A stretch of 63,555 nt of DNA, the filler included, from Lenisia limosa (Eukaryota; Protista; Breviatea), in assembly GCA_001655205.1 (NCBI GenBank). It is 9 parts of 9 records of this genome, joined end to end, with 100 filler letters (N's around TTAATTAATTAA, not from the genome) between each part and the next. Parts side by side here need not be neighbours in the genome. Positions count along the whole stretch, not along the records: positions 1 to 26,135 come from LPNZ01001809.1; 8 more parts are not named here. The stretch is one strand, 5' to 3'. The translations under genes and the position numbers were made by a program. How positions within the stretch are numbered: position 1 is the stretch's first letter; every line of letters starts with the position of its first letter. The notes under the pieces were generated by a model. It ran no database searches, was not told where the DNA came from, and worked only from the letters and a program-made list of their open reading frames with translations. This document shows positions 229 to 20,402 of the stretch, one piece after another.

Positions 229-474
229 CGTACAGCCAACCTTATTTACTAATTACTGGCTAATTATTAAACAATTAAACAATTAAACAACACAACACAC
301 CAACACACTTTGTACACCACACTTTGGGATTTCTGGCTTCTTTCAGATACGAATTTACATCTTGACTGGAATTTGCCCTGCTTGCAATTGTTTAAAAAAA
401 TGTTGTCAAAAAGGAAAAAGAAAGAAGAAAAGAAGAAAAGAAGAGCATTGAATCTACACTACCCAGTTCTAGTG

Positions 475-3400
475 ATGAAAATGACGGGTTTCCCGAAGTT
501 TTTGCTTCTATTGTTACTTTTTTCGCTACTAAATGCATTCATTTTGATAAACACTAACAGCACAACCGAAGTACTTGGTAGTATCCTTTCCCCGCGTTCA
601 CACCTTATTGTGTAGGGGATCTGAATGTTATCGGAGGACGTATTCTCAAAGATGGAGTAGAAGTTGGATTAACAGGTATGATTGGACGATAGGTTAATTC
701 TGAACATGTTCTTTTTATTGACTCGGCTAGTTTTTTTTTTTTTTTTTTTTTTNNNNNNNNNNNNNNNNNNNNNNNNNNNNNNNNNNNNNNNNNNNNNNNN
801 NNNNNNNNNNNNNNNNNNNNNNNNNNCTTTTTTTTTACCAGTCCACAGGCCCCAAAGGCGAAAAAGGTGATCAGGGAGATCAGGGCATACAGGGAGTTCA
901 AGGTATACAAGTAGGTGGGAAATGTAATGAGAGAACCTTACTTTTGAGTTGTGCCTGATGACGTGGCAATGCGAAGAATTTCCCCGACACGGCAAATCTT
1001 TTTTTGTGTTTTGACGAACTTAGGGGATCCAAGGCCCAGCAGGAGCGGATGGGACCGGTGGAGGTGAGGCCTTTGTCATTTGTTGCCCGATTTGATGGAT
1101 ATGAACAGAAAAACACCATTCATTTAATATACATAAGATGGAATCTATTAGATATATGATATTAGATCATATCAATATCATATAGTAGATTGTGTACGGT
1201 GTGTAATATATATATGATATGATATAATTACATGATATGATATAGTATCTATCATATTAGTAATTATTTTGGCAATTATTTTGCAGAAGCAATTGTTGTG
1301 CAATTCTTTTGGAAGGCGGCTATTTGTTGCAAAGGGTCCAATAAATATTTGAGATGGCTGATTGACAAAACAGGGTCCAACTGTGCAGCCAAAACCATAA
1401 TTTGGGGGAGCTGCAGGAAGTACACCAGTGCACTCAATCATGCGCGTACACGCTCACTTGTCAACTCACAAAGCGGCTATTCTGGCAGCGCTGTGGTAGC
1501 ATGTATTAACGGAGTACATATCATTTCTGGTACCTCCAGTTGTGCTGCTGACGTAATGTTGGGGGGGGGGGNNNNNNNNNNNNNNNNNNNNNNNNNNNNN
1601 NNNNNNNNNNNNNNNNNNNNNNNNNNNNNNNNNNNNNNATCGTGTTTCCCTGGACATATGCGAGTGACCATGGCGGATGGCAAGAAAATTGATATACAAT
1701 CAGTCAGGCCAGGCCAGGTTGTCAGATCCATCAATGGCCAAAATGCAACGTAGGTTGTGATGCTGTGGAAATGTTTGGATAGTACACAACGAATGGGTAT
1801 ATGTCTTTGTCTTTCTTGGCTTATGTGAAACTCATTCATTTATTACTTAGAGTCGTTGGAGTTGATAAGACTGTCTTGGGGAGCCGATTTCTTTATAAAG
1901 TTCACCAGGTTTGTTCATTCAATATTCAAAATGTGCGTTCCATTTCTTTTTTCTTGTTAATGTGATCTACTACCATTTGGATTCCTCTGATTATCACAGT
2001 GCTTATTCGAAATATTATATGGTAAATCGAACAGGAAGTGTTAACAACTTTTTTTTTTTTTGTTGGTAAAAGAATCCTACTAAGAAGGATTTTATGGGAT
2101 GGCCTTGTGTGTAGTTTACAATTGAAATCTTAGTTTTAATATCACGATTTTCAGCTTGAACTGACCGATGAACACCCCATTTGGACTCGTAATGGATTCG
2201 CTGTTATCAAGTAGGAGGGACAATCAGAGTTGTAGTCATACATAATACACATATTATTATGCATATATCATCAATTTGATAGTATACTATCTTTTCTAGT
2301 AATATATATAGTTAAAACCGCGAACATGATTAAAACCGCGAACAAAAGGAGGCTTTTCTTTCAAATTTTGAGCCAATACGCTCCTTATTTACGCCTCTTT
2401 CGCATTTTTTGCAAATTATCGCCCGAAACACTCCTTTATACAGGGTTTTATTCATAAGAATAGGCAGGGGTATCAACATCCATGCAAAATACCACCTTCA
2501 TGGTACTTCAATTTTTCATGCAAAATACATTAAAAACACTGATTATGGGCCTAGAATTGTCCCTGCGATAAAGTGAAGACGTTCTTGCACCATCAGATTT
2601 GATTTTTTCCACTCTTGAGTAACCTAGAGACATTTAAGTAGAGAATACGAGACAAATTGGGCAAAAAATGAGCGTAAATTACCCATAAATGGGCGAAAAT
2701 ATGATAGAAGATGTTAATAAATCAAGCGAATTTGACTATTACCTTTTGTGCCGTTCCAGAACGGTAAATGAGTTGTTGACGTCCATTGGCTCCATTATAG
2801 AGACTGAACAAGAAAAATTCTTGAAAAAACCGTTACAAAAGTTGACTTAAATACCTCAAAACCACTACATTTTCTCCAAAAATGGACTTCAGATTCAAAT
2901 TCTCCTTAAAAATCTGCGTTTCTATAGTGGGGCACTTTAATAGGCTTAAAATGCTATTATTCTGAAAGAGGGGTGTTTCAAAAAATATTTTCGCGTTAAG
3001 GAAACTGGGTGACCCCAGCGGGTTCGATTCTGATAAAAAGATCTTTTTTTTCGATTTTTTTATCTCGTCATTTGTTTCTTCTTTTTGCTCAAAATTTCTT
3101 TGTTTTGATGTTATTGATAGTCTACTCAAAACTGCCGAATTTCACACTAAAAAGGGTGCTATTGAAGCGATTTATGTCGATTTTTGGCTTGTTCGCGGTT
3201 TTAATCATGTTCGTATATCATAAAATCATATAATTACTATTATATAATGGCTAGTATATGATAGGCATTTCACTCTATCCTATCAAAACAAACGCAAATA
3301 TTCTACTGCATGCAAATATCATTGTACGTGATGAGACAACCCTTATTTATGTGTTTGAAACGGTTGTTTGTGAATACCTGATTTTTCAGTCTCACGTCCT

Positions 3401-4010
3401 ACCGCTCAGAAGTGGGAGAAGTTCGGCCAGTGGCTACTTCTCAGGGGCAGAAGATGATGCAATACAAGGGTGGGTTGGCAAAAACTTTTCAAAGGGCGAC
3501 GTGGGTAGAATCATGCTTTCTTTCCCAAATAGCCTTGTAAATAATTGTTCACAGGCATGGAGTCCATTGTCCAGTTTGAGGATAGAATGGAAGTCTTGCA
3601 CCTGAAGGGTAAAACCGAACAATTTCTCCCTGCAAAGGTTGGTAGCGTTCTTCAATGTAATAACGGGGTTCCTTTTACAATCTTTTTGTATTTCATATTC
3701 AAACAGCGAACTCTGGACAATTTATCATTTTTGACCACATTTTAGATTCACAAATTGGATACTGGCCATCCAGACCTGAAGCTTTTCTCTCTTGTTTTGG
3801 ACGGGCCTGTAAGAGGGGAATGCATTTGAGAGCATGAAATGCATTGGGCTTTTCTCAGTTCATTTGTTTAATTCTTATGCAATATGCAACCAGACTGTTT
3901 TTTAACCTGATTAGTTTTCACATTCTTCATTTCTTCAGCAAGTGATGTTCGTCGAAGATGTTGCCGTAAGTGGTTGGGCAAACGACGATGAGGAAGGTGG
4001 CGAGATGTAG
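475..4010 (+). CDS. Secreted collagen-Hint protein, copy A (about 12 exons)
   Basis: Joined exons give: signal peptide MKMTGFPKFLLLLLLFSLLNA; EVLGDLNVIGGRILKDGVEVGLTG; collagen GPKGEKGDQGDQGIQGVQGIQGIQGPAGADG; Cys module GSNCAAKTIIWGSC...GYSGSAVVACINGVHIISGTSSC; Hint SCFPGHMRVTMADG...LELTDEHPIWTRNG...LFSLVLDG...QVMFVEDVAVSGWANDDEEGGEM*. Small assembly gaps fall within introns. Confidence 0.85.
2321..3213. mobile_element. TIR-bounded non-autonomous DNA transposon in an intron of Hint copy A
   Basis: Perfect 25-bp inverted repeat: cgaacatgattaaaaccgcgaacaa (2321-2345) and ttgttcgcggttttaatcatgttcg (3189-3213), with TA-rich flanks. The equivalent intron in copy B is under 100 bp, versus about 1.2 kb here. 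Confidence 0.7.
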
Positions 4011-4183
4011 CTGTTTTAGTTTTTGAAATTTGGGTATTTGTTTGTCATGTTATGTTATTATTATGTAGTATTTTGTTGTATTATATTTCAAAAGGTTTAC
4101 TTTTGTACTTGTATTATGTTTCTTGGGTGGGGTATTGACTTAACCAAAAATACATCAAGGGGAAATTGACAATAAACAGTGAA

Positions 4184-6036
4184 CTACTCCATCATAGTGA
4201 GTTTGTCATCACTGGCCCATCCACTTACGGCAATATCTTCAACGAACATTATTTGCTGGGGGGGGGGGGGGNNNNNNNNNNNNNNNNNNNNNNNNNNNNN
4301 NNNNNNNNNNNNNNNNNNNNNNNNNNNNNNNNNNAACGAGTGAAAACAGCTTCAGGTTGCGTTGTTTGTACTCTTGCTTTTGCATCTAAAAATTAATATT
4401 TATCACCACAAGTAAAAAAGAGTCAAATCTTTGGACCTAAAAGTACCAACCTTCACAGAGGCCCATTGTTCAGAACTTCCTTTAATTTGCAAGATCTCCA
4501 TTCCTTCATCAAACTGCCCAATGGATTCCATTCCTGTGTTCCATTATAATTTCATTGGGACTATGAGATACATGGTGGCAATTTTACCCACGTCGCCCTT
4601 TGAAAAGTTTTTGCCAACCCACCCTTGTATTGCATCATCTTCTGCCCCTGAGAAGTAGTCACTGGCCGAACTTCTCCCACTTCTGAGCGGTAGGACGTGA
4701 GACTGAAAAATGAGGTATTGTGGCAATATTGTTTTATAAACCTGCAACATGCTATCAAAAATGGTAACAGCCCCAAGCCTCCTTGAACAACCCAGCCCAC
4801 TTGATAACAGCAAATCCATTACGAGTCCAAATGGGGTGTTCATCGGTCAGCTCAAGCTGAAAATCGTGATCATTGAAGATTAAGCAGTTTTATAAATGCT
4901 TCCCGGTGACACAGCCGTCTCACTTCATTTAATGAGTAAAGGAATCGGTCGCCCAAAAGAGTCTCATCAATGCCGATAACTCTAAAAGAAAAAAATATCA
5001 GACAGTTCTTGTATAACTATTGGGTTTTCTTATAAATTCACTTCAGTTCAACTTACGTTGCATTTTGGCCATTGATGGATCTGACAACCTGGCCTGGCTT
5101 GACTGATTTGATATCAATTTTCTCGCCATCTGCCATGGTCACTCGCATATGTCCAGGGAAACACGATCTAAAAACATAGTGAGCATGAGTCATTGAGACT
5201 TCCCATCCTTCCCATACACACACATCAACGTAGGTGCAACTGCTCTCGCTGTTGGAGATAATTCTCCCATTCAGACACGCAATAATAATTGAGCCACTGT
5301 AGGATCCAGAAGTGGTCAGGGTCTTCGAGGCCGTGTGGGTCATTGAACCAGAAGACATCTGGCACCCACTTCCCCATCTAACTGTACTGGAACCACATCC
5401 GCTTCCTTCAGTGTTAACATTAGTTGACGTATGTTTATAATGTATGATTACATTTTGCATAAAATATAAAAAAGGGTATTATTCATCCCTTTCTCCCATT
5501 ACCAGTAATTCCGTCTTCACCTGCAGGACCTTGGATGCCCTGATGGGAATGAGTTGAATCAATGGTAATAAAAATGACCATGAGAGGTAGGAGCATACCT
5601 GGATTCCCTGCTCTCCCTGAATTCCCTGATCTCCTTGCGGGCCTTGTGGACCTGGTATGGTAAGCACAGATTCTTCAGCCACAAACGTATCCTCAGACTC
5701 ACCAGTCAGGCCTATTTCAACACCGTTGCTCATAACTTTTCCAAGGACATTGATGTCTCCTAAAACGTAAAGAAATATGATATGGGATATGGGATATAGT
5801 AAGGGTGAAAAATGCTATATTTTCTTTATAACTGTCCCAATAGAAACGCAAGAGATATGGCAGGAATGATCAAAAACACGTTTGCATCCGCATCTAGTCA
5901 TCTAATCTATCAAAACCTGCAAGCAGGCAGAGAATGCCCGTATACCTGGAACCTCAAGCGTAAAGTTATGGTTGAGATAAAGGAAGCCGTTTGCAGAACA
6001 GAGAAGCACTAGAAGAAGCAAAAGCGAACCAATCAT
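4184..6036 (-). CDS. Secreted collagen-Hint protein, copy B (paralog, convergent with copy A)
   Basis: Joined exons give: MIGSLLLLLVLLCSANGFLYLNHNFTLEVP; GDINVLGKVMSNGVEIGLTG; GPQGPQGDQGIQGEQGIQGIQGPAGEDG; GSGCGSSTVRWGSGC...GSYSGSIIIACLNGRIISNSESSC; SCFPGHMRVTMADG...LELTDEHPIWTRNG...QIMFVEDIAVSGWASDDKLTMME*. Intron positions match copy A where they can be compared. Confidence 0.85.
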
Positions 6037-6425
6037 TGTCCAGAGTGAGGATGGAGGTTAATCTATGGGTATTTATTCAATGATTTATATATCACACGTT
6101 AGGTTTAACTTAATTATAGAGATCTTACTCAAGATTGACACAAGGAATGCGAAATACAGGCGATTAGGGGAAGACAAGCCGCCACGTCACTATTTCTTGG
6201 TCCGGTTTTTTTTTTGGATCAAAAGATCATTCTCTGGGCAGTTACTTGCCTTATATGGTACAATCCACTCCTCTGCAGTTTTGGTTTGTGGGCGCTTCCG
6301 TCAACCTGCTCCTTCATTTTTGCAACTCATGTCACTCTGAATATATGATGTTGCCATTATTTCAACCAATTTTTGTTAAGTTCCTCAAATAATTGACTTG
6401 CAGATAAACCAAGGCAGATATTAGA

Positions 6426-8700
6426 TGAAAGTAGCAACATTCATCACATTCTTCTTTTTGGTTGTTCTCTTTAGACTTCCTTGTGTCAAATGCGCTCCTA
6501 CAAATGTGTCATTAACAGGTGCGATTGAGATGCTAAATGTAGTCTGAAAAGAAATCTGACCTTGTCAGTGCAATGTCAAGAAACTAAACTAGAGTTGCTG
6601 TATTGTGCCAAGTAATATATTATACGTATCCGAACGATTTGAGCAATTTTCCATGCGTTAACTCCTCAGTGTGTCCGGATCCTGAAGGTGTGGGCGCGCC
6701 AGACTTCAGCCTTGTGCGCACAACAGCTAACACTCTTTCGGAGAACTTAGTCTCCGTCGAATCGTTCCAAAAAATATTTTTCAACAGAACTGCTGGGTCA
6801 AAACAATGGTATTCTTGTCTTGCTTTTTTGTAAAATATGTGTGGTACATGTGTGTATTTCTTGGATAATTAATTGTTTTTTATTTCACAATAAACTGATT
6901 TCCTCTAACCCCCAAGTTTAAAGCGAGAAAAAACGCTGCTAGCAGACGATGATGAAGTTATCGGTTTCTTTGTGGAGCGATTTACTCCTGTTATTGTGGA
7001 ACACACTTTGTCATCAACCTTTCTCACCATGTGGAGTATGGGGTGATTTGCAAAGCTGTCACTATATTCATACGACCTCGTTTACTCTTTATTGCATTCA
7101 TACGACCTAAAGGATGAATTGCAGTTATTTATGTTCAGACCTCTTCCCAGACCTGGTGAAGGATATTACTTCAATTTGGACAAGTGTCAACAAAGATGAC
7201 CGGCTATTTGACGGTACATGAACAAAATGATATAATTACCCTGTAGTTGCTGAGGTGGTCAATCGAGCCGGTGTGAAATCCACAACAACACAAGCCTTCC
7301 TGCCCCTGACGTTCCATTCCACAGCTATTCATATTAACTTGGTCGGTTGTGGTCCTTGAACTGTCAGTGAGAATAATCGTTCCCTCCAAAACAGAGCAAA
7401 TAACAAAACCCATCTAACTGCATTTCTAATACTTTAGGGGACTGCTGAGTCACTTGGTATTGAATACTCAGGTTTGGACAAAACTTGAAAGCAAATAGTC
7501 CGAAGAGGGGGAACTATTCTGATTACCTAATTAATAGAGGACGAGAAACTATGGCGTTGTTTTATATTTCAGATATTCCGAGGTCGTTCACTCAAATGCC
7601 TACCTTCTGCAAAAAGGTCAGAAGTCTTGGTTCCTACACTTTTGTTGTCGGTGCTAAAGGTTAGAGGGCGAAAACCTTGACACAATTCAAAAGAATATTT
7701 TGTGTTAAAATTTTTTAGATGACATGGAGAATATTTCTTCCCTTTGGTTTGATGCAATTCTTCTGAATTTATTTGGGAAAGACTTTAGAGAAATGTTCAC
7801 CACTGCTCCGTCCAAAGGCTCTGTAGGTGTTACTATTGCTTCTCCCTCAATTATTTTGGTGTAATTAGTATTTTTAAAACGAGTGCACGATGATCAAACA
7901 TTGTCATTTTCAGTGGAACGACCCTCGAATTACAGTCGCGTTCAAGATGTTCCGTGCCTTGGTTGAGGCTGACTGCTTCTACCCAAATGCAAACTCGCTT
8001 AAAGTAAGCAAGTAAATAAGGCCCATGAAAGAAATACAATATAAACCAAAGAATGTTCAAAAAGAAAATTATCGTGCATCTATCATTAGCATGTTTTCTC
8101 TTCAAATTTTAGCTCTCTTTCTCCAACATTCTAATTGCATTTAGCTGTTTGATGCAACACAAACTGACGCAAATGCTGCAGAGCTTTATGCCGATGGTCA
8201 TGCTCTTGGGGTGAGACAGTTTGCTTTTGCAAGTGAATTTTCGAACGTTACATTATCCTAAGTCACATCTGATGATATCACCGAGTTTCCTTCGACCTGA
8301 CAAAGTAGGCGATTCTGTCGCCGAAAATGACTCAATACATGTTCTCGTCAGGTATATTCCTGAAAGCCATCCAGACAGACGTGTGGCCGTTCGAATGTAA
8401 TAACGGTGGACTTATACACGGCATGCAAGTCAGTAGAGTCTTTGGTATCTAATATGATATTATGAGTGCTCATATTTCACAAGGGTTTAAATTGGGTTTT
8501 TATGAATATCCTTAGTTTTTTATCATTCATAACAAATTACAAGGAATTTGCATTTAAAATCAAGATTTCTTATCATTCTAGTTTGTTGGCATCAGCGTTC
8601 CAAGTAACATTGATGATGACCAAGCAAGTACCATTGGTAGTATGTACTTTGATGATGTGAGCAAATAATTAATTGATGAATAGATGAACCTCTGTTCCCC
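6426..8700 (+). CDS. Uncharacterised secreted or membrane protein (multi-exon; 3' limit uncertain)
   Basis: ATG at 6426 gives signal-peptide-like MKVATFITFFFLVVLFRLPCVKCAP, followed by a GT donor and a series of GC-richer exon-like blocks separated by AT-rich GT-AG segments. No family recognised. Confidence 0.5.
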
Positions 8701-11969: not shown

Positions 11970-14900
11970 TCATATTTAGAGAGCCTTCCTTGTAACAATC
12001 TCAGTTCAACTGACTTTGAGACAAACAATGAGTTCTCAGCCAAGTTTTCTGGAGACTACGAGAGCAGAAGAAATGATTGCCCCAATGTTGACATTAGAAA
12101 TCTCGACACGTACATTCCACATGAGGAAAATTCCGTGTTGGTTGCTTTGTTTGTGGGTCGATTAAATAGATTATTATTCTATTTAAATTAATGAAATAGC
12201 TTTTGTATGGTTTAGCTTTGAAATTTCTCAAATATAATGCTATATTTTACTCTCCCGATGTCACTATTTTTACATCCAAGATACGTTTACTCTTCCGGAA
12301 TTACTCTTAATCACTACCTATCGCAGTATATTCTAACTCCCCGAGTGGTTTGTTGACATTGCTGCTTTACTAACGATAAGGCATGTTCCTTTATTCGTGA
12401 TGTTTGTCTGGCTTTTTCAGCAATTTCCAATCTCTCAAGTAATTCTCGACTATTGGTAGTTCCACCTGCTATGGTAAGTCTCTTTGTTGTCAAGAAAGTT
12501 GTTTTTCTACAACTACATTATGACTGATTCATTAATTTTGTTTAAATATTACTTGTCGAATAACAAGACTCCATAATTTACACACTCACTTTACGGCATA
12601 TTTTTCTATCTTAGCAATTCAGAACTTCTTTGTGTCTAATTCTAATGATGAAAATCCCCAAGTCCGCTTTTTCATGTGCCCTTCTGTCCTTAATGCATGT
12701 CTGCCATCAGAAAAAGAGAGTGTTGAACATAAATCAGGAAGGTAACTGTGAAAAGAAAACTTGTACCAACCTTCTTTGATATTACCAACAAACCTTTCAG
12801 TATTGTCACTCAAATGAGCACTTCATCAACCCCTATGGAGCAAATGGAAAGTGATCGCAGTCACACGTCATCTTATTATAGTGTTAGATCGTACGTTGGG
12901 GGATAACCCATCATTGGAGTTCAACTCATATGCGCTTTATTTTAAATTCTCCTTTTGATGACGAAGGGTTCAGTCTGAGGATATTCCAGTCGGTTGGATT
13001 GCCTCCCTTATTGATCTTGCCGAATTGGTAGGATGGTGAGAAGTAGCGGTTTTCTAAAAATTTTTTTATTATTTATTGTTCCATTTATTCCCCTTTTATC
13101 GCGTTTACACCATGTCAATGAAACAAAATAGATTAACTTTTCATTATTCCAAACATTTTCAAATAAAAACTCCTTAGATCGAAGACTCTGTCAACAATTG
13201 GTATAGTATGGAAGAAAGGCCTTCAACTGAATTTCGTGCTACTACCCAGGTCAGATAAAGTTTTTTTATTTCACAGAGTGCCATCAAGCTCACAAAACTA
13301 ACCAAGTTAGAAGCCGAATTGGGACATGTTCCTCTCCATTGCCAATACAATGACCAGTAACGCAAGTTTGCTGGAGGAGCAGGCTGCGTTGGAGGAGGAA
13401 GTGCGACATCGGACGTTGGAACTGACAAACTCCTACACGGCACTGAACAAAGAAGTGTGCTTTTACATAATGTTTTGTACAATGGTTGACAGTATTTTTC
13501 AATTTTGTCCTAATGTGAAAAAATAAAACATTCTATTGTGCTAATATAGGCTTCTTTGAAGAATATACAATATCAATCATGCTTAACTCCCAGATATCGC
13601 GGCGAATTGAAGCAGAGGACCAGGCAAGGCGCGCTGCTGGGGCTGTTCGTCAGTTCTTCGCTTCGTGGTTCCATGATATTAGGGCTCCTCTCACTGGTTG
13701 GTGCTAGAGTCTATATTGAATTACCATGATCAGACCCAATTTTATGAGTATCATTCTTTCATATTATCAGCTGTTCTTGGAACTGCGTCACTGTTGATTG
13801 AGGGGTCACTCGACAAGGAGCAAAGACCTCAGGTAGCTGGGGCTTCTCAACTGGCTTTTGCAATCAGATTAGTTACGAAAATAAACGCGTTATTATGACA
13901 AACACAATTGTTTTGTCGAATTCAGGATATTTCCCCTCTATCTTACTGAAATATAATCGTATCATTTTAGGTTTGATGCTTCAGGTTGAAATTGTACAGT
14001 CAGCTGGCCACTCCCTCCTCCATCTCCTCAATTCAGTTCTCGATGTATCGGCCATACAAGTCTGTCAAGATAAGTCAATACCATGATAACATACAAATGC
14101 ACCAAATGAATTCATTATACTTGGCCCGAATAGGTGCTTCTTTCTTAACCGTTCACAAATTTCTTTCTGTTTATTTCTTAGGCTGGAAGGATGAACGCTA
14201 ATATTCTTGAAAGCAAGCCATTCAGCCTCATCAACACGCTCAACGCCACGTTGAGCTCTTTAGCGTCACACGCACAGGTATTTTTCAATGTGTATCTTCT
14301 CAAAATAAAACAAATGAAAAACAGCAAATACAACAACCACAAATAGATTTATTTCCTAGTTCAAAGGGTTGCTCTTCCGCACACGAATTTCCTCAGATGT
14401 TGTACCTTTGATATGTCATGGTGATCCTCATCGGTTCAAGGAGGTAACGATGGTTCACGTCAGAAGAGTAACTCCTCCAGGTTTTAACCCATGTGGTTGG
14501 AAATGCTGTCAAGTTCACAATCTCGGGATGCGTAACGTTCACTGTTTCCACTGTGGGAATGCCTACTCTTTGCAGGTTTGGAGAGACTAATAAAAGGTTC
14601 ACTTATTTAGTCATCATTCCCCGAACGTATAAGGTTCACTTATTTAGTTTAGTCATCATTCCCCGAACGTACAAGGTTCACTTATTTAGTCATCATTCCC
14701 CGAACGTACAAGGTTTACTTATTTAGTCATCATTCCTCGAACGTACAAGGTTCACTTATTTAGTCATCATTCCCCGAACGTACAAGGTTCACTTATTNNN
14801 NNNNNNNAAACCAAACACTCTCATAACTTTGTACCATTTTTGGACACTCTGAAGCACACGTTCAGCATTTCTTCTGAAATACGTGATGTTCATGAGGTGG

Positions 14901-17900
14901 GTCTGATGAAGTACCAATTGAAACATACATTTTTTGCCAGTCTTTTTAATTATTCAGATTAACCTTATTGAAAAGGGGGATCGAATTGCAATCAAAAGTC
15001 AGCCCAATCCAACTATGGACAAGAACCGAAGCAATGTTTCAATTGTCAGAAGGGCAGTTTACTCATTATGAGACTGGGTTTCACTGTCTTTTATTTACTT
15101 TTTAGCCTTCCGACTTCAACCTCAGTGAGTGGCAAGAAAGTGGTTAAGTTTGTAAAAGAGGGCATGTATAGAAAAGGTCTTTCTTCGCATTTGTAAAACG
15201 ATTTCTCCTCACTATAATCGAATTGTGGCTACCAAAGTTTTTATATTTACTTACCATCATGATTATCTCAGGTCCTTGTGATGATGATGAAGTGGTAATA
15301 ACTGAAACTGAAACTAACGAGAAGCACGTGGTTTGGTTTAGATTCCAAGTAAGCGAGCGTCCAACAGCGATTTAATTATCATTCTGTAAACGTTGCTACA
15401 AACCAGTAATAAGAACTTCAAGTGTAATACAAATCTATTCCTGATCTGAACAATCAGGTGACCGACTCTGGTCCGGGCATTCATCCTGACAATATGTGCA
15501 AGTTGTTCCATCCGTTTGAAATGGTGTGGTTCTAATAAGCTGATGCCAATTTAGTCCTATATATTATATATGATATACTATATGTATATTTTCAAATTTC
15601 TCATTTAGTTTTTATGATTTTTCAATGTTATTGTATTGTTATAATGTTAATTATTAAAACGGCACAATAATTTCACAGGTAGATGAATCAGCCAGACAAG
15701 AACATGGTGGCTCTGGTCTGGGACTATCAATTTGCCAAGTGAGTTTAAGTAGAACACGCAACACTTCTGATGATGATGTGACTCTTTCAGCACCTTGTTG
15801 ATGTAATGGGGGGGCGGATCATGATCACTTCAACTGTGTCAGCGGGCTCGACCGTGACAGTTGACCTGCCCTTTCCCTGTACCGCACTAGTTGCACCGAT
15901 GTCCAATTATAACCACTCCAAAGTATGATCCGCTTTCAAATGTAGTTGCTTTAGAGATCTAACTTAATACACATACAACATTTCGCATGTGTCAAATCTA
16001 AAACTAAAAACGTCAATATATAGTAGATACTATCACATGAAGGCATACCAAACACTGAAACTCCTCTTGTTGTGTTTCACCACTTTCATCACACTCAGAT
16101 ATTTGTCATTGGAGGAGAACAGCCAAGTGAAGCCCCTGCACTGGCTACTTTCATCATTGGACTGTCTCGAGATGTAATGATGTTTCATGACGTAAGTAGG
16201 CTCTGCAATTGATGGTAATATCACTTTAGTTGCATAGCAATTTACTGTTTAGGTCAATGTAGCACTTCGGTCGTTGCAAGATGTGACCAGACCTTTACCA
16301 AAAACCATTTTCATCTGTATGGAAATTGTTCATCAAAGCGATCAGTGTTTGAATTGACGACTTACACCACAGTCCCATTTGGCAACATAATTAGACCTTC
16401 CTTAGCCGGGCGTCGCACCAGGTCAGTTCTTGATTTGCCTGCTCCTTGTATAATGTCTTGTTTTTTGTGAGTCATGACGTTCTTAGATCCAACACTAGCC
16501 TTCCGCCACCTGCTAGTCAATCTTGGACGTCAATGGCTTGTAACACAGCACAACTTGATATTTCGGGGGTCTTGATGCGATCAGTGGGGATGGATTAGAA
16601 AATGTCATTTTAGACAACTCAATTCTAAATGTTGTTACTCAATGATGTATAAGACAGTCTTGGAGTCTTGATACATTTCTCAAATGGCACTTCTTCAGTC
16701 GAGTTTATAAAATATAATGTTAACTATTCAGGCAAGAATACCCCCAATGAAAAAGGACACAGTGAGTTGAACAAACTGTTTGTTTGATTTGTGTTTACGC
16801 TTAATCTATTGTCATATTGTTGTTTCTGATTTAAATATTGCCTCCGCTATGTAAATGCAAGTCATATCCCTAGAGTTCCAACAATGACATTGGACTGCCC
16901 GGAAGCCCATACACTCATGACCCACCCCTGTCATTTGTGGACAAAGATGAAGATGATGAAGAGGAGGATGACAAAGTGGACCATGTATTTGGGACACAAA
17001 ATATCATATACTACTATATAACTATATATGCTCGATGTCCTAAACTATGTCGTTAATTCGAATTATTGTCGTTAATTCAATTNNNNNNNNNNTATCTAAC
17101 ATCATCAATGCTTCTCTACATCTATCTATGTATCTATGTGTAAACACCCCAGAAGTCTTCTCTACATGTATATAATATGTTAACACATTCCAGAAATCTT
17201 CTCTACATATATATATGTATATATATGCTCGATGTCCTAAACTATGTCGTTAATTCGAATTATTGTCGTTAATTCAATTNNNNNNNNNNNNNNNNNNNNN
17301 NNNNNNNNNNNNNNNNNNNNNNNNNNNNNNNNNNNAAAATTCGCGAGCGTGGCGCTAAAAAAAAAAAAAAAATTTCCACGATAAAGTGCTGATCTTGCAA
17401 AAAAAAACAGAAAAATTTTGAAAGGTTATATTTTTCTTTGTTTTCCTTCATAAACAAATAAAGTGTGTATATCTCAGAAATATATTACCTTTTTGAAGGG
17501 GAATAGCTGATTTGGCGACCGTAAATAATTAATGACATGAATTCGAAAAAACGACATAATTTTGGACCTTGAGCATATATATACAGTGGGCATCTATGAC
17601 ATGCCCTTTTTTAGACGAGTAATTGAACAAAAAAATTTACATTTTAACTGTGAAATGAAATACTTATCATATTGAAATCGGCACTAACAACTTTTATTCA
17701 AAACCACCGAATAGAAAAAATATCATATCATATGGTAATTATCTGGACTAGGTACGAAATAAGCATATGTTGTATACAGATTCAATATTCAGGGAACAGA
17801 ATCCACTCTTAAATGTATAGGCTGTCCGTTTAAAAAATGAGGAGTCTTTCAGCTCTATCGTAACCCCAACTGAGATCACCACTGATTTATATGGTAGGCC

Positions 17901-20402
17901 CAATTTTTGGCGTGTGTTGCTCTGGTCAAGTCATCAAATTGTCTATTGTTGTTTTTTAAGTACATATGTAGGCTTATACCCATTGTTGTTAAAAACTAGT
18001 TGTAAATGAGTCAGGTGACATCAAAGAACAAAGTCAATCCCTTGGATCAGAAACGCACTCTCCGAGCAAGGAGAAAAAAGTGCGATCCGAGGAACCTATC
18101 AGACATTCCGAGCCAGTTGTTTTTGCTACTACCGCCCAGTCTTCAACTCCGGGCACCTTTGGGGCTAATTGTCAAGTTGATCTGAAGTCTTCGTTTGTTA
18201 AAAAAGATGTATGAGTGATCTCTGTGATAGTTATAAGGAACAGATTTTTTGTATTAATCATCTAGACCGGCAAAAGAAATCATATACAACTGGAATTTGG
18301 TAGGGTTTTTTTTTTGAAAAAATAAACTACAATATATGTGAGATACTCGAGACAAATGAAAAAGTGTGAGAGTTCCTGAAATTTCATTTATATTTTCTAA
18401 ATAAAATGTTTTGAATTTCTGATTTTACTACAATGTAGAGAAAAACGACCAAATTGGTTCTTCAACTCAGTAGGTTACGGTTTTCACTCAACTGTTAAAG
18501 GGTTCAAGTACTTCTGAAATTGGGTTTTTTGCAAAATTTCATATACTACTACTAATACATAATTTTTATGATGTGCGTTCTCAATGATTGAAAAGGACTA
18601 CGAAGACTTAACCATCAGGGAAAACCAGGACGATATCTTCTCTGGCCATTTCAAAACTATTCTCTGTCATCGCACTCTCACGGTTCGTGAGATAAAATAA
18701 CGGCTTCATTACATATTATATTGGTTTTCAAATAAACTAATGGGAGTTATAAATTTCCGGTTCGGTAGCATGGTCTTATGACCCTTCATAGTTTGACCGT
18801 GAGCCTTTCAAAGCAAGTAATTTCTGGCCCCTTTTGGAACCCATCAAAGATGTATGGACCGCAACAAACGCGAGGTATGCGAAATATAATCTGAAAGAAT
18901 GTGATAATGTAGGTCAAAGTCAACATCAGCAAAAACGGACACTTTGATAGTGGCTGTCACACCTGAGCCGCTTTTATCTTTAACAGAAGACTGGATCAAA
19001 GAAAATGTCCAACAAGATGACGTCAAAAGGTATTCACACGCAATATCGCTACAGAAAATAGAAATCAAATAATTAATAAATATAATATGATATTTCCTAT
19101 TCTGTTCCAACTAAATCATCTTTTGGTGACGTTAACCATTTAGATCATTGGCGGTTATTGGCAGTCCTTATTTGCTTGAAACAGTTCAAGACATTTTAGA
19201 TACATCATCACACTGGCATCCTAAGTTGGTTGTGCACAAGATATAATACCACTTATGCATTTCTTCCACCTCCTTTCCATAGAACTCCATTTCTCTTATA
19301 GAACCGCATCTGGAGATGATATGGGTGGAACGTATCAAGGAAGAGGTGGCAATACCGTTCTGGTGGTTGATGACAACATGGTTAATAGAGTAGGCTTACT
19401 ACTACACTATTGCAAGACATACCATGATATTATGTATTGATGCATTTATTCCCATTTCAATTCCAAAACTATTAAATCCGATATTTGTAGAGGATTAAAC
19501 TTAGTCATCTTTCTGGAATCGGAGCAAATTTTCGGTACAAGTATTATAAGCATAGGGATGGATATAATATGGAATAATGTATAGCTGTGCATTTTGACAT
19601 CGTTAGCGAGTGGTCTCAGCAATGTTGAAGCGCCTCGGGTGGGGTGTCCAAGAAGCTGCAGATGGTCACCAAGTAGGCGTCCAATTGATATCCCCAAAGT
19701 TCTTACATACAACCCCCCCGTCATCTTGTTGTAACTCTTTTCTTTTTGAATGAAAAACAAATTTCCTTGAAAATACACCTGCAGCAAGCAACTCTTAAAA
19801 CAAACAATACTACAGTTTCACAGATGTATTGGAATCACCTTTTAGGCAGTAACAGTTGTCAAGGAAACAAAGCCTGGTAAAATTGCAGTCATCCTAATGG
19901 ACGTGCAAATGCCTGGAATGGACGGACTACAAGCGACACTGGCAATCAGTGGGGTTGATTGACATTTTAAATTGGATAGAGAAAAGAGATGGTGCTTTTT
20001 TTACATTGACAAATGTTATATCTTATAAAATAGGGCAATGGGAGAGTCAGCGGAATCTCCGGACACCTATTATTGCCCTCACAGGTTTGTGAAGCGGTCG
20101 AAATGGTCAATATTTGTTTAATATTGCCATGGGTTTAACCAATCAGGAGAGTCAACAGCAGAAGAGGGCAGACAGTGTATCGACTGTGGTTAGCTCATCT
20201 TTTGGGGATACTCACACATGTAATTTAATCATCCTTATTCCGCATAGATTTCTTATAAAAGTGCTGATGCGAACAATGCCAGAAAGACACCAACTTTCTT
20301 CTCACGTTTTATCTTTCAGGCATGGACGCAGTTCTGATAAAGCCCATCACTCTACCTGCCCTTCGACTCACCATGGACAAATGGTCATTTCACGATCGCT
20401 AA
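11970..20402 (+). CDS. Hybrid histidine kinase (HAMP-like linker, HisKA, HATPase_c, degenerate receiver-like linker, receiver); start uncertain
   Basis: Exons encode: KPNWDMFLSIANTM...LEEEVRHRTLEL (HAMP/coiled coil); H-box FFASWFHDIRAPLT; LLHLLNSVLDVS; GDPHRFKE; N-box VGNAVKF; G1 DSGPGI; G2 GGSGLGLSIC; HLVDVMGGRI; receiver VLVVDDNMVNR-RVVSAMLKRLG...ILMDVQMPGMDG...IIALTG...GMDAVLIKP; stop at 20400-20402. Confidence 0.9.
14594..14797. repeat. 37-bp minisatellite (about 5-6 units, continues into a gap) in a histidine kinase intron
   Basis: Unit aaggttcacttatttagtcatcattccccgaacgtac, repeated tandemly just after the N-box exon. Confidence 0.9.
17019..17583. mobile_element. Imperfect TIR element (MITE-like) within the kinase locus, partly gapped
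   Basis: tatatgctcgatgtcctaaactatgtcgttaattcgaattattgtcgttaatt (about 17024-17077, repeated at about 17222-17275) is the imperfect reverse complement of aattaatgacatgaattcgaaaaaacgacataattttggaccttgagcatata (about 17527-17579). Flanks are TATA. Confidence 0.55.

Follow-up and report, generated by a model that had tools for sequence, protein, structure and literature searches.

The window analysed here is a 63,555-nucleotide stretch of DNA from the breviate protist Lenisia limosa (assembly GCA_001655205.1; nine parts joined end to end, of which positions 1 to 26,135 come from LPNZ01001809.1). Between positions 475 and 6036 it carries two convergent paralogous genes, called A and B below, whose predicted products share one layout: signal peptide, GD(L/I)NVxG beta motif, a run of Gly-X-Y triplets, a four-Cys module, a Ser|Cys junction and a Hint domain. 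In the reading that we favour, to which we assign a probability of roughly 0.6, each gene encodes a secreted, self-processing Hint precursor whose thioester would be resolved by water or a small nucleophile, so that a product of ~120 residues with a collagen-like stalk and a Sushi-like head would be released.

Gene models and transcripts

The window is clearly eukaryotic DNA; it is AT-rich (38% G+C), and short GT-AG introns break its coding sequence up into numerous small exons. Gene A lies on the plus strand (475–4010, 323 aa) and gene B on the minus strand (6036–4184, 314 aa, a count that keeps four residues inside an assembly gap as X). An earlier note, made from the sequence by itself, had described a tail-to-tail paralogous pair with stops about 170 bp apart, and this description holds: a tblastn search of the whole window with pieces of gene B found a single other copy, gene A, and the two stops (TAG 4008–4010 in gene A and TAG 4186–4184 in gene B) are 173 bp apart. 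In the final models each gene has 12 exons, with coding sequences of 972 nt (A) and 945 nt (B); the 22 modelled introns, 11 per gene, are GT-AG wherever they are readable, and both reading frames close and are intact. The order of elements that the earlier note had given, with a Hint domain starting at S-C-F-P-G, is present in both spliced models. The individual features are listed here by position, with the supporting evidence in brackets.

475–577, plus: gene A exon 1, with the start codon, Leu-rich signal peptide and an N-X-S/T site (RNA contig 451–576, which then departs from the genome at the donor).
616–675, plus: gene A exon 2, with the GDLNVIGGRILKDGVEVGLTG motif (38-nt GT-AG intron upstream; tblastn match to gene B exon 2).
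676–848, plus: gene A intron 2, with the assembly gap 753–826 (homologous gene B intron confirmed by RNA).
849–1063, plus: gene A exons 3 (849–910) and 4 (1024–1063), Gly-X-Y run, 13 triplets from GLT (RNA depth present).
1374–1557, plus: gene A exon 5, four-Cys Sushi-like module with Cys 92, 102, 132 and 145 (bacterial-repeat profile, E 1.4e-16; 184 nt, as in gene B).
1558–1638, plus: predicted gene A intron 5, with donor at 1558, a G-run and the gap 1572–1638 (homology with the RNA-confirmed 54-nt intron of gene B).
1639–1749, plus: gene A exon 6, with Ser 1640–1642, Cys1 1643–1645 and Hint block A (Pfam Hint E 4.4e-5, Vint E 1.2e-4; codons checked).
1851–2210, plus: gene A exons 7 (1851–1908) and 8 (2155–2210), the latter with T-D-E-H, Thr at 2164–2166 and His at 2173–2175 (model, Hint profile alignments).
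2321–3213, no strand assigned: non-autonomous transposon in gene A intron 8, outside the protein (25-nt terminal inverted repeats; DNA depth).
3390–4010, plus: gene A exons 9 (3390–3469), 10 (3555–3637), 11 (3746–3808) and 12 (3939–4010), second half of the Hint domain (model, RNA loose end, profile-profile alignment).
3969–3980, plus: gene A S-G-W-A (exon 12; stop TAG 4008–4010).
5946–6036, minus: gene B exon 1, with the start codon and signal peptide (RNA contig 5945–6100, splice from 5945 to 5758; in-frame stop upstream of the ATG).
5503–5759, minus: gene B exons 2 (5759–5703; GDINVLG), 3 (5651–5599) and 4 (5539–5503), 12 triplets (three RNA joints; weak Pfam Collagen match).
5222–5405, minus: gene B exon 5, four-Cys Sushi-like module with Cys 83, 94, 123 and 136 (RNA piece 5222–5404; profile E 1.3e-14; AlphaFold2).
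5057–5167, minus: gene B exon 6, with Ser 5166–5164, Cys1 5163–5161 and Hint block A (RNA joint 5167/5222; Pfam Hint E 2.5e-5).
4184–4981, minus: gene B exons 7 (4981–4924), 8 (4856–4801; T-D-E-H), 9 (4702–4623) and 10 (4533–4451) (model).
Within the same range, minus: gene B exons 11 (4385–4335 plus 12 nt in the gap 4272–4334) and 12 (4255–4184) (RNA contig bridging 4255 to 4335).
4225–4214, minus: gene B S-G-W-A (exon 12; stop TAG 4186–4184).

The exon structure, splicing, polyA expression and domain order of the pair are established by these models together with two public runs from one study, a DNA assembly of ~71 Mb and a polyA RNA library, whose contigs were aligned to positions 400–6100. 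The DNA run is probably the source of the window itself, and the RNA alone is counted as independent evidence. One RNA contig of 620 nt matches gene B without a mismatch and leaves out its first five introns (186, 51, 59, 97 and 54 nt); read on the plus strand the omitted stretches have CT..AC ends, and thus GT..AG on the strand of gene B. Another RNA contig extends unbroken from 4255 to 4135 and spans the gene B stop. RNA-seq, the check that the earlier note had proposed, supports the spliced models given here at the first five introns of gene B and across the gap in that gene. The positions that the note had given for the elements stand; its exon structure had to be revised, since the RNA adds two short in-frame introns in gene B and gives exon 9 a different frame. 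Those two introns, at ~5652–5702 (51 nt) and 5168–5221 (54 nt), are both in frame and stop-free, and the RNA joints rule out reading either of them as coding; splicing of the former removes an ESEDTF... stretch, and splicing of the latter, which lies between the Cys module and S-C-F-P-G, removes 18 residues, among them a spurious fifth Cys. At a loose RNA end at 3554, gene A exon 9 ends ...ATACAAGG; this end fixes the frame and acceptor of that exon and rules out its naive frame with the other acceptor. Over gene A the RNA depth tracks the exons and falls to nothing across the long introns. It is zero in the bin 1164–1354 (gene A intron 4), which favours the acceptor at 1373/1374 for exon 5 and speaks against an alternative in-frame acceptor at ~1286 that also has no counterpart in gene B.

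The gap at 753–826 lies inside gene A intron 2 (676–848) with T-runs on either side; the joining of exons 2 and 3, at GT..AG, keeps the phase, and gene B has an RNA-confirmed 51-nt intron at the matching place. The gap at 4272–4334 takes the last 12 nt of gene B exon 11 and most of intron 11. Here an RNA contig links 4255 to 4335 via 12 letters that encode L-D-G-P, the same residues that gene A has there, and a DNA contig links 4271 to 4335 via 67 letters (the window shows 63 N), so gene B is continuous and in frame across this gap. The gap at 1572–1638 falls in gene A intron 5 by homology with gene B and is the only one of the three without read support; the donor GT at 1558–1559 gives gene A an exon 5 of 184 nt, the same as in gene B, and exon 6, from 1639, starts with the same 15 bases as its gene B counterpart. 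By this comparison the gene A frame would continue across the gap. The stretch between the stops has a single AATAAA, at 4171, and this lies 13 bp ahead of the gene B stop (on the other strand). Because there is only this one, the 3' ends of the convergent A and B transcripts probably overlap; RNA depth is continuous over 4011–4183.

Domains of the predicted proteins

Both proteins begin with a Leu-rich hydrophobic N-terminus (judged by eye), followed by GDLNVIG in A and GDINVLG in B, and both products are predicted to be secreted. For gene A the ATG at 475 is the preferred start by homology with gene B; RNA coverage at 400–474 is masked by a low-complexity A/G repeat. The Gly-X-Y triplets that follow are consecutive and uninterrupted, 13 in A and 12 in B; the run had been recognised in the earlier note, and its count of 10–11 is replaced by these numbers from the spliced models. 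Three exons joined in phase encode the run, and in gene B the RNA joints confirm the collagen frame over all three. Pfam Collagen PF01391 gives 15.6 bits against a cut-off of 27.2, with a run that is shorter than the 60-aa model. At 12–13 triplets the earlier term "fibre" does not suit the structure, which would be a stalk of ~10 nm, and this collagen-like stalk would presumably trimerise. A minicollagen or nematode cuticle-collagen reading was rejected: the Cys pattern does not fit those families, and the resemblance of a neighbouring gene to hybrid histidine kinases (below) argues against an animal.

The 57-aa four-Cys module is present once in each protein. When the exon that holds the Cys module and Hint start was used in a phmmer search of 1.84 billion representative proteins, 12 matches fell below E 1e-3, and no close relative was among them. 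Most of the matches are long and have 5–11 tandem copies of the module, several of them together with a prepilin N-terminal methylation motif. A profile built from the bacterial units alone matches both proteins end to end (1–57 of 57), at E 1.4e-16 for A and 1.3e-14 for B. Shared by A, B and the bacterial units are four Cys, an invariant Trp and a G-Y-x-G-S-A core, in the pattern C-x6-W-G-x2-C ... G-Y-x-G-S-A ... C-x-N-G ... C; in all of 42 aligned units W, Cys2, G and Cys3 are unchanged, and conservation of Cys1 and Cys4 is at least 90%. Local copies of Pfam and NCBIfam held no model for this bacterial 57-aa repeat. One database protein, P0014, is made up of 11 such units and carries the precomputed accession PF27521, which from that make-up would be the repeat itself.

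An AlphaFold2 model of the gene B module, made with the bacterial-repeat alignment, is all-beta with a predicted local distance difference test score (pLDDT) of 93.5. Its matches among AFDB clusters, at template modelling (TM) scores of 0.82–0.90, include proteins named Sushi domain-containing, and PDB matches obtained with VIA-align, independently of Foldseek, over residues 1–60 at Z 3.5–5.2 are CCP and HRM modules (factor H CCPs, the IL-15R alpha sushi domain, DAF, C1s/MASP CCPs and the HRM domains of class-B G protein-coupled receptors, or GPCRs); ESM Atlas gave fold matches on the same Sushi/CCP/HRM themes. Foldseek against PDB with the 60-aa module returned nothing below E 1, no Pfam Sushi sequence match to the module was found, and its Trp lies 7 residues after Cys1, whereas the Sushi signature wants a Trp between Cys3 and Cys4. 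We are confident, on the basis of the model, that the module is Sushi-like at the level of the fold and belongs by sequence to the bacterial repeat family. The Sushi/CCP/SCR modules and the HRM domains of class B GPCRs are, as is predicted for the module, disulfide-bonded all-beta units of ~60 aa with four Cys, and it is at the fold level alone that they resemble it. The sole PDB sequence matches to the exon pieces, the designed repeat proteins Tako8 and ZZ4, were set aside as noise.

The Hint domain was analysed from exon fragments and from local hidden Markov model (HMM) and hhalign runs on the spliced domain. Pfam Hint PF01079 matches 34 residues from C-F-P-G (E 2.5e-5 in B, 4.4e-5 in A), with Vint as the second match, and C-F-P-G-H falls on position 1 of Pfam Vint, positions 12–13 of Pfam Hint and position 1 of the local Hint profile; the Cys1 codon is TGT at 1643–1645 in gene A and 5163–5161 in gene B. 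An HMM that combines 12 Hint units taken from the database matches finds both A and B at E ~1e-14 and aligns Cys1, block A and T-D-E-H-P, the last of which (A T210, B T201) falls on T-x-e-H-P of the profile in both genes. Seven Hint units were cut from P0005 and three from P0006, and P0010 has three Hint-type matches; these three proteins, all among the phmmer matches, consist of tandem intein-like Hint units arranged head to tail (...VHNK-GG-CF...) with almost no extein between them, which is an odd arrangement, and they also show spurious-looking AXH or Tim44 matches. In a global hhalign run the profile-profile alignment covers 144 columns (query 1–161 against template 1–154 of 154; probability 98.9%, E 1.3e-16) and reaches the last Hint strand, so that the domain of ~160 aa runs from Cys1 through TDEH to a final S-G-W-A.

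At the end of the domain, V-A-V-S-G of gene A and I-A-V-S-G of gene B sit on I-L-V-H-N of inteins, and since S-G occupies the aligned positions in both proteins the His-Asn for C-terminal cleavage or splicing is absent. After S-G-W-A comes a tail of nine residues (NDDEEGGEM in A, SDDKLTMME in B), with no Cys, Ser or Thr directly past the Hint end, no extein domain and no hydrophobic or membrane-binding segment. The sterol- or adduct-recognition region (SRR or ARR) of ~60–70 aa that lies past the SCYA-like loop is absent from both; a hidden SRR exon is impossible, because one contiguous RNA contig includes the gene B stop and the genes are 173 bp apart. An Asp 18 residues upstream of the Thr is kept in both proteins (A D192, B D183) and may, by manual comparison, correspond to the general-base Asp of Hedgehog. 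Judged by these alignments the Hint of A and B is complete, with the N-terminal acyl-shift residues; it falls short of a full Hog domain and is not an intein either. The Hint domain of the earlier note is supported in that Cys1 and T-x-x-H, which an N-to-S acyl shift needs, are kept; its suggestion of coupling to a lipid is disfavoured, as the proteins stop nine residues after S-G-W-A and have no SRR, the element on which such coupling depends in Hedgehog.

Evolution and neighbourhood of the pair

Compared as DNA, A and B form a mosaic, with identities of 95%, 96% and 99% in exons 6, 8 and 9 and of 54–75% in the other exons. Exon 6 differs at 5 of its 111 bases, so A and B are distinct copies; in exon 9 (3390–3469 against 4623–4702) 79 of 80 bases match, 39 of the first 40 bases of intron 9 are identical as well, and the identity also extends into the end of intron 7. 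At the protein level the Hint domains are 74% identical and the N-terminal parts 52%. The shared exons have ~2x the DNA depth of the flanks, which fits two true copies and speaks against an assembly collapse. The mosaic indicates short gene-conversion tracts between the inverted duplicates, which would homogenise the Hint exons while the N-terminal part diverges.

The transposon in gene A intron 8 (2321–3213) is ~890 nt long and has perfect 25-nt terminal inverted repeats (CGAACATGATTAAAACCGCGAACAA); its DNA depth is in the thousands, against ~25–38 for the flanks, from which there are probably hundreds of copies in the genome, and diverged copies are also found in RNA contigs. The homologous intron of gene B is only 98 nt long.

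Farther along the plus strand, at ~13300–19450, is a gene in many small exons with an N-box at 14502, G1 at 15464 and G2 at 15709; it has three collinear weak Pfam HATPase_c matches (E 0.009–0.06; profile positions 6–32, 41–62 and 64–85) and a receiver-like VLVVDDN motif at 19357 on the same strand. From these motifs it is probably a hybrid histidine kinase; a tblastn search with a bacterial histidine kinase fragment found nothing. Hybrid histidine kinases typically occur in fungi, plants and protists rather than in animals. Nearer to the pair, at 6425–6520 on the plus strand, an open reading frame (ORF) with a hydrophobic, signal-peptide-like N-terminus (MKVATFITFFFLVVLF...) lies ~390 bp upstream of the gene B start and on the opposite strand, and it may be a divergently transcribed gene for a secreted protein. 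Rfam RNA families had no matches in the window, and Pfam searches with the neighbouring long ORFs were uninformative.

Proposed processing of the precursor and known systems

The favoured mechanism would run as follows. The precursor of ~315–325 residues would be secreted and its signal peptide removed, and the Hint domain, with Cys1 and T-D-E-H, would then turn the Ser-Cys bond (S151–C152 in A, S142–C143 in B) into a thioester by an N-to-S acyl shift. This thioester would most likely be resolved by water or a small nucleophile, since the Hint domain is the last domain and has neither the SRR of Hedgehog nor the His-Asn and downstream nucleophile of inteins. The N-terminal product of ~120 residues that would be released comprises the beta motif, the stalk of 12–13 triplets (~10 nm as a trimer) and a single, presumably disulfide-bonded, Sushi-like head, and the Hint fragment would be a disposable, self-removing C-terminal pro-domain. 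By analogy the product is probably a miniature collectin-like molecule that acts in recognition or adhesion. Collectins, C1q and ficolins also join a short collagen stalk to a small globular head, with no sequence relationship to A and B; the predicted product differs from them in that its head is Sushi-like and not a C-type lectin, gC1q or fibrinogen domain, its stalk is much shorter and its C-terminal pro-domain would remove itself.

Several points weigh against this reading. We infer the cleavage, the nucleophile that resolves the thioester and the biological role from the predicted proteins. The single-exon 34-aa fragments score 24.4 and 23.6 bits, under the PF01079 gathering cut-off of 29.7, which is explained by the use of one 37-aa exon at a time as the query. 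The 95–99% identity of the shared exons reflects gene conversion, in which intron sequence is shared too, and is not by itself evidence of selection for catalysis. The signal peptides were called by eye inspection alone, and gene A has an in-frame upstream ATG at ~400 with no stop before 475, which would add a basic 25-residue extension (MLSKRKKKEEKKKRR...). The donor of gene A intron 5 is weak (GTTGGG) and its acceptor AG lies within unread letters. Finally, the collagen run is short and proline-poor, so that a stable triple helix is not assured.

Other fates of the thioester were also considered. It could be attacked by a specific nucleophile other than water, such as a lipid, a wall or coat glycan or a protein amine, and the fragment would then become covalently anchored to the cell surface or to a target, a generalised version of the coupling that the earlier note had proposed. 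Both paralogs keep Cys1, T-x-x-H and the Asp (A D192, B D183) that manual comparison puts at a Hedgehog-like position; we nonetheless think it unlikely, as there is no SRR, ARR or other C-terminal extension, S-G-W-A is followed by 9 acidic residues, no hydrophobic or membrane-binding segment comes after the Hint domain, and the SRR has been described as the feature that enables sterol ligation (PMC7906309). It is slightly less probable again that the Hint domain stays uncleaved in vivo in a structural or binding role, for instance that of a trimerisation nucleus, and that the full-length protein is the functional form. Such a role would suit the general need of collagens for a non-collagenous domain to nucleate trimerisation, and also the Ser that precedes Cys1 where Hedgehog has Gly and the divergence of the Hint sequence (21% identity to the intein-like units); against it, every residue known to be needed for the acyl shift is kept in both copies, and C-terminal Hint domains of secreted proteins, where studied, are autoprocessing modules (PMC2362128).

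That the pair might not consist of functional eukaryotic genes at all, and might instead be decaying pseudogenes, an assembly chimera or bacterial contamination, we regard as very improbable and, from the aligned contigs, as largely refuted already. Three assembly gaps lie in the region, the sequence-detectable relatives of the Cys module are only bacterial, and near-identical A and B exons could in principle stem from an assembly collapse. Each gene, however, has eleven spliceosomal GT-AG introns, the splice joints of the polyA RNA contigs fall exactly where predicted and the contigs match without a mismatch, both frames are intact, and the 5 differences in 111 bases of exon 6 and the doubled DNA depth over the shared exons point to two copies. 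A further, quite speculative possibility, to which we give less credit than to a specific nucleophile or an uncleaved Hint domain, is that a eukaryote made a novel type of extracellular molecule by combining the bacterial-type Sushi-like module with a sterol-independent Hint domain that, as a self-removing C-terminal pro-domain, nucleates the mini-collagen trimer, leaves an activated thioester on the Sushi-like head and then passes it to a non-sterol nucleophile at a surface, the adjacency of module and Hint perhaps having come from bacteria; if true, this would be covalent, Hedgehog-like anchoring without cholesterol.

Among known systems the nearest in general scheme are secreted proteins, known from across the eukaryotes, in which a short, lineage-specific N-terminal part that contains Cys precedes a Hog/Hint domain at the C-terminus (Buerglin 2008, PMC2362128); alveolates, red algae, mosses, cercozoans, cryptophytes, jakobids and nematodes provide examples. 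Like these, A and B have a signal peptide, a short Cys-bearing N-terminal part and a C-terminal Hint domain with Cys first and T-x-x-H, and their S-G-W-A loop resembles motif J/SCYA, the loop of Hedgehog; unlike them, A and B are Hint-only, with no ARR or SRR after the Hint domain, and a collagen plus Sushi-like N-terminal part is a combination that PMC2362128 does not mention. The general scheme is thus not new, having been described already as widespread in protists. With Hedgehog the pair shares the Cys that opens the Hint fold for an N-to-S acyl shift and the layout of a secreted N-terminal product and a discarded C-terminal fragment; it differs in having no Hedge domain, Ser and not Gly before Cys1, and Gly for Cys and Trp for Tyr in the SCYA-like loop, and since there is no sterol-recognition region cholesterol transfer is not expected. 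In contrast to inteins, A and B have neither the C-terminal His-Asn nor the Cys, Ser or Thr of a C-extein.

The only other proteins found in which the module adjoins a Hint domain are P0009 and P0013, bacterial and metagenomic, which have a signal peptide and 4–6 modules, the last directly before a Hint domain that starts with S-C-F or similar; P0009 is located in a prokaryotic gene neighbourhood. They differ from A and B in having 4–6 tandem modules where A and B have one, no collagen run and no introns, and in an intein-like Hint domain with H-N at its end and a Cys-rich domain of ~105 aa behind it, where that of A and B is terminal. The bacterial pseudopilin-like proteins P0002, P0003, P0008, P0011 and P0012, the source of the profile, carry the same 57-aa repeat; these have the prepilin methylation motif and 5–11 tandem modules, and neither Hint nor collagen. 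No protein with collagen run, module and Hint together was found in the representative library, the JGI metagenomes or IMG/VR, nor was the combination of collagen, Sushi-like module and Hint found in the literature searched, in keeping with the earlier note, which had not recognised the architecture; close relatives turned up neither in the JGI metagenomes nor in IMG/VR, the latter searched because the note had pointed to giant viruses.

The locus therefore offers no new mechanism and is a variation on a known theme; what is new in A and B is the cargo, a collagen-like run and a bacterial-type Sushi-like module, combined with a Hint domain that has no adduct-recognition region. Hint domains with N-terminal cargo other than that of Hedgehog are the presumed ancestors of Hedgehog autoprocessing, and to our knowledge the products of such proteins, and the resolution of the thioester where there is no SRR, are largely unstudied. 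The pair is a compact, expressed example of ~315 aa with an unusual, easily assayed cargo and a clean Ser|Cys site, and it supplies two natural variants in which an almost identical catalytic core is joined to diverged cargo. It also ties a bacterial extracellular repeat to the Sushi fold, a likeness that may not be widely appreciated for a repeat of pseudopilin-linked proteins, and the occurrence of that repeat beside a Hint domain both in bacteria and in a eukaryote bears on how combinations of extracellular domains have spread.

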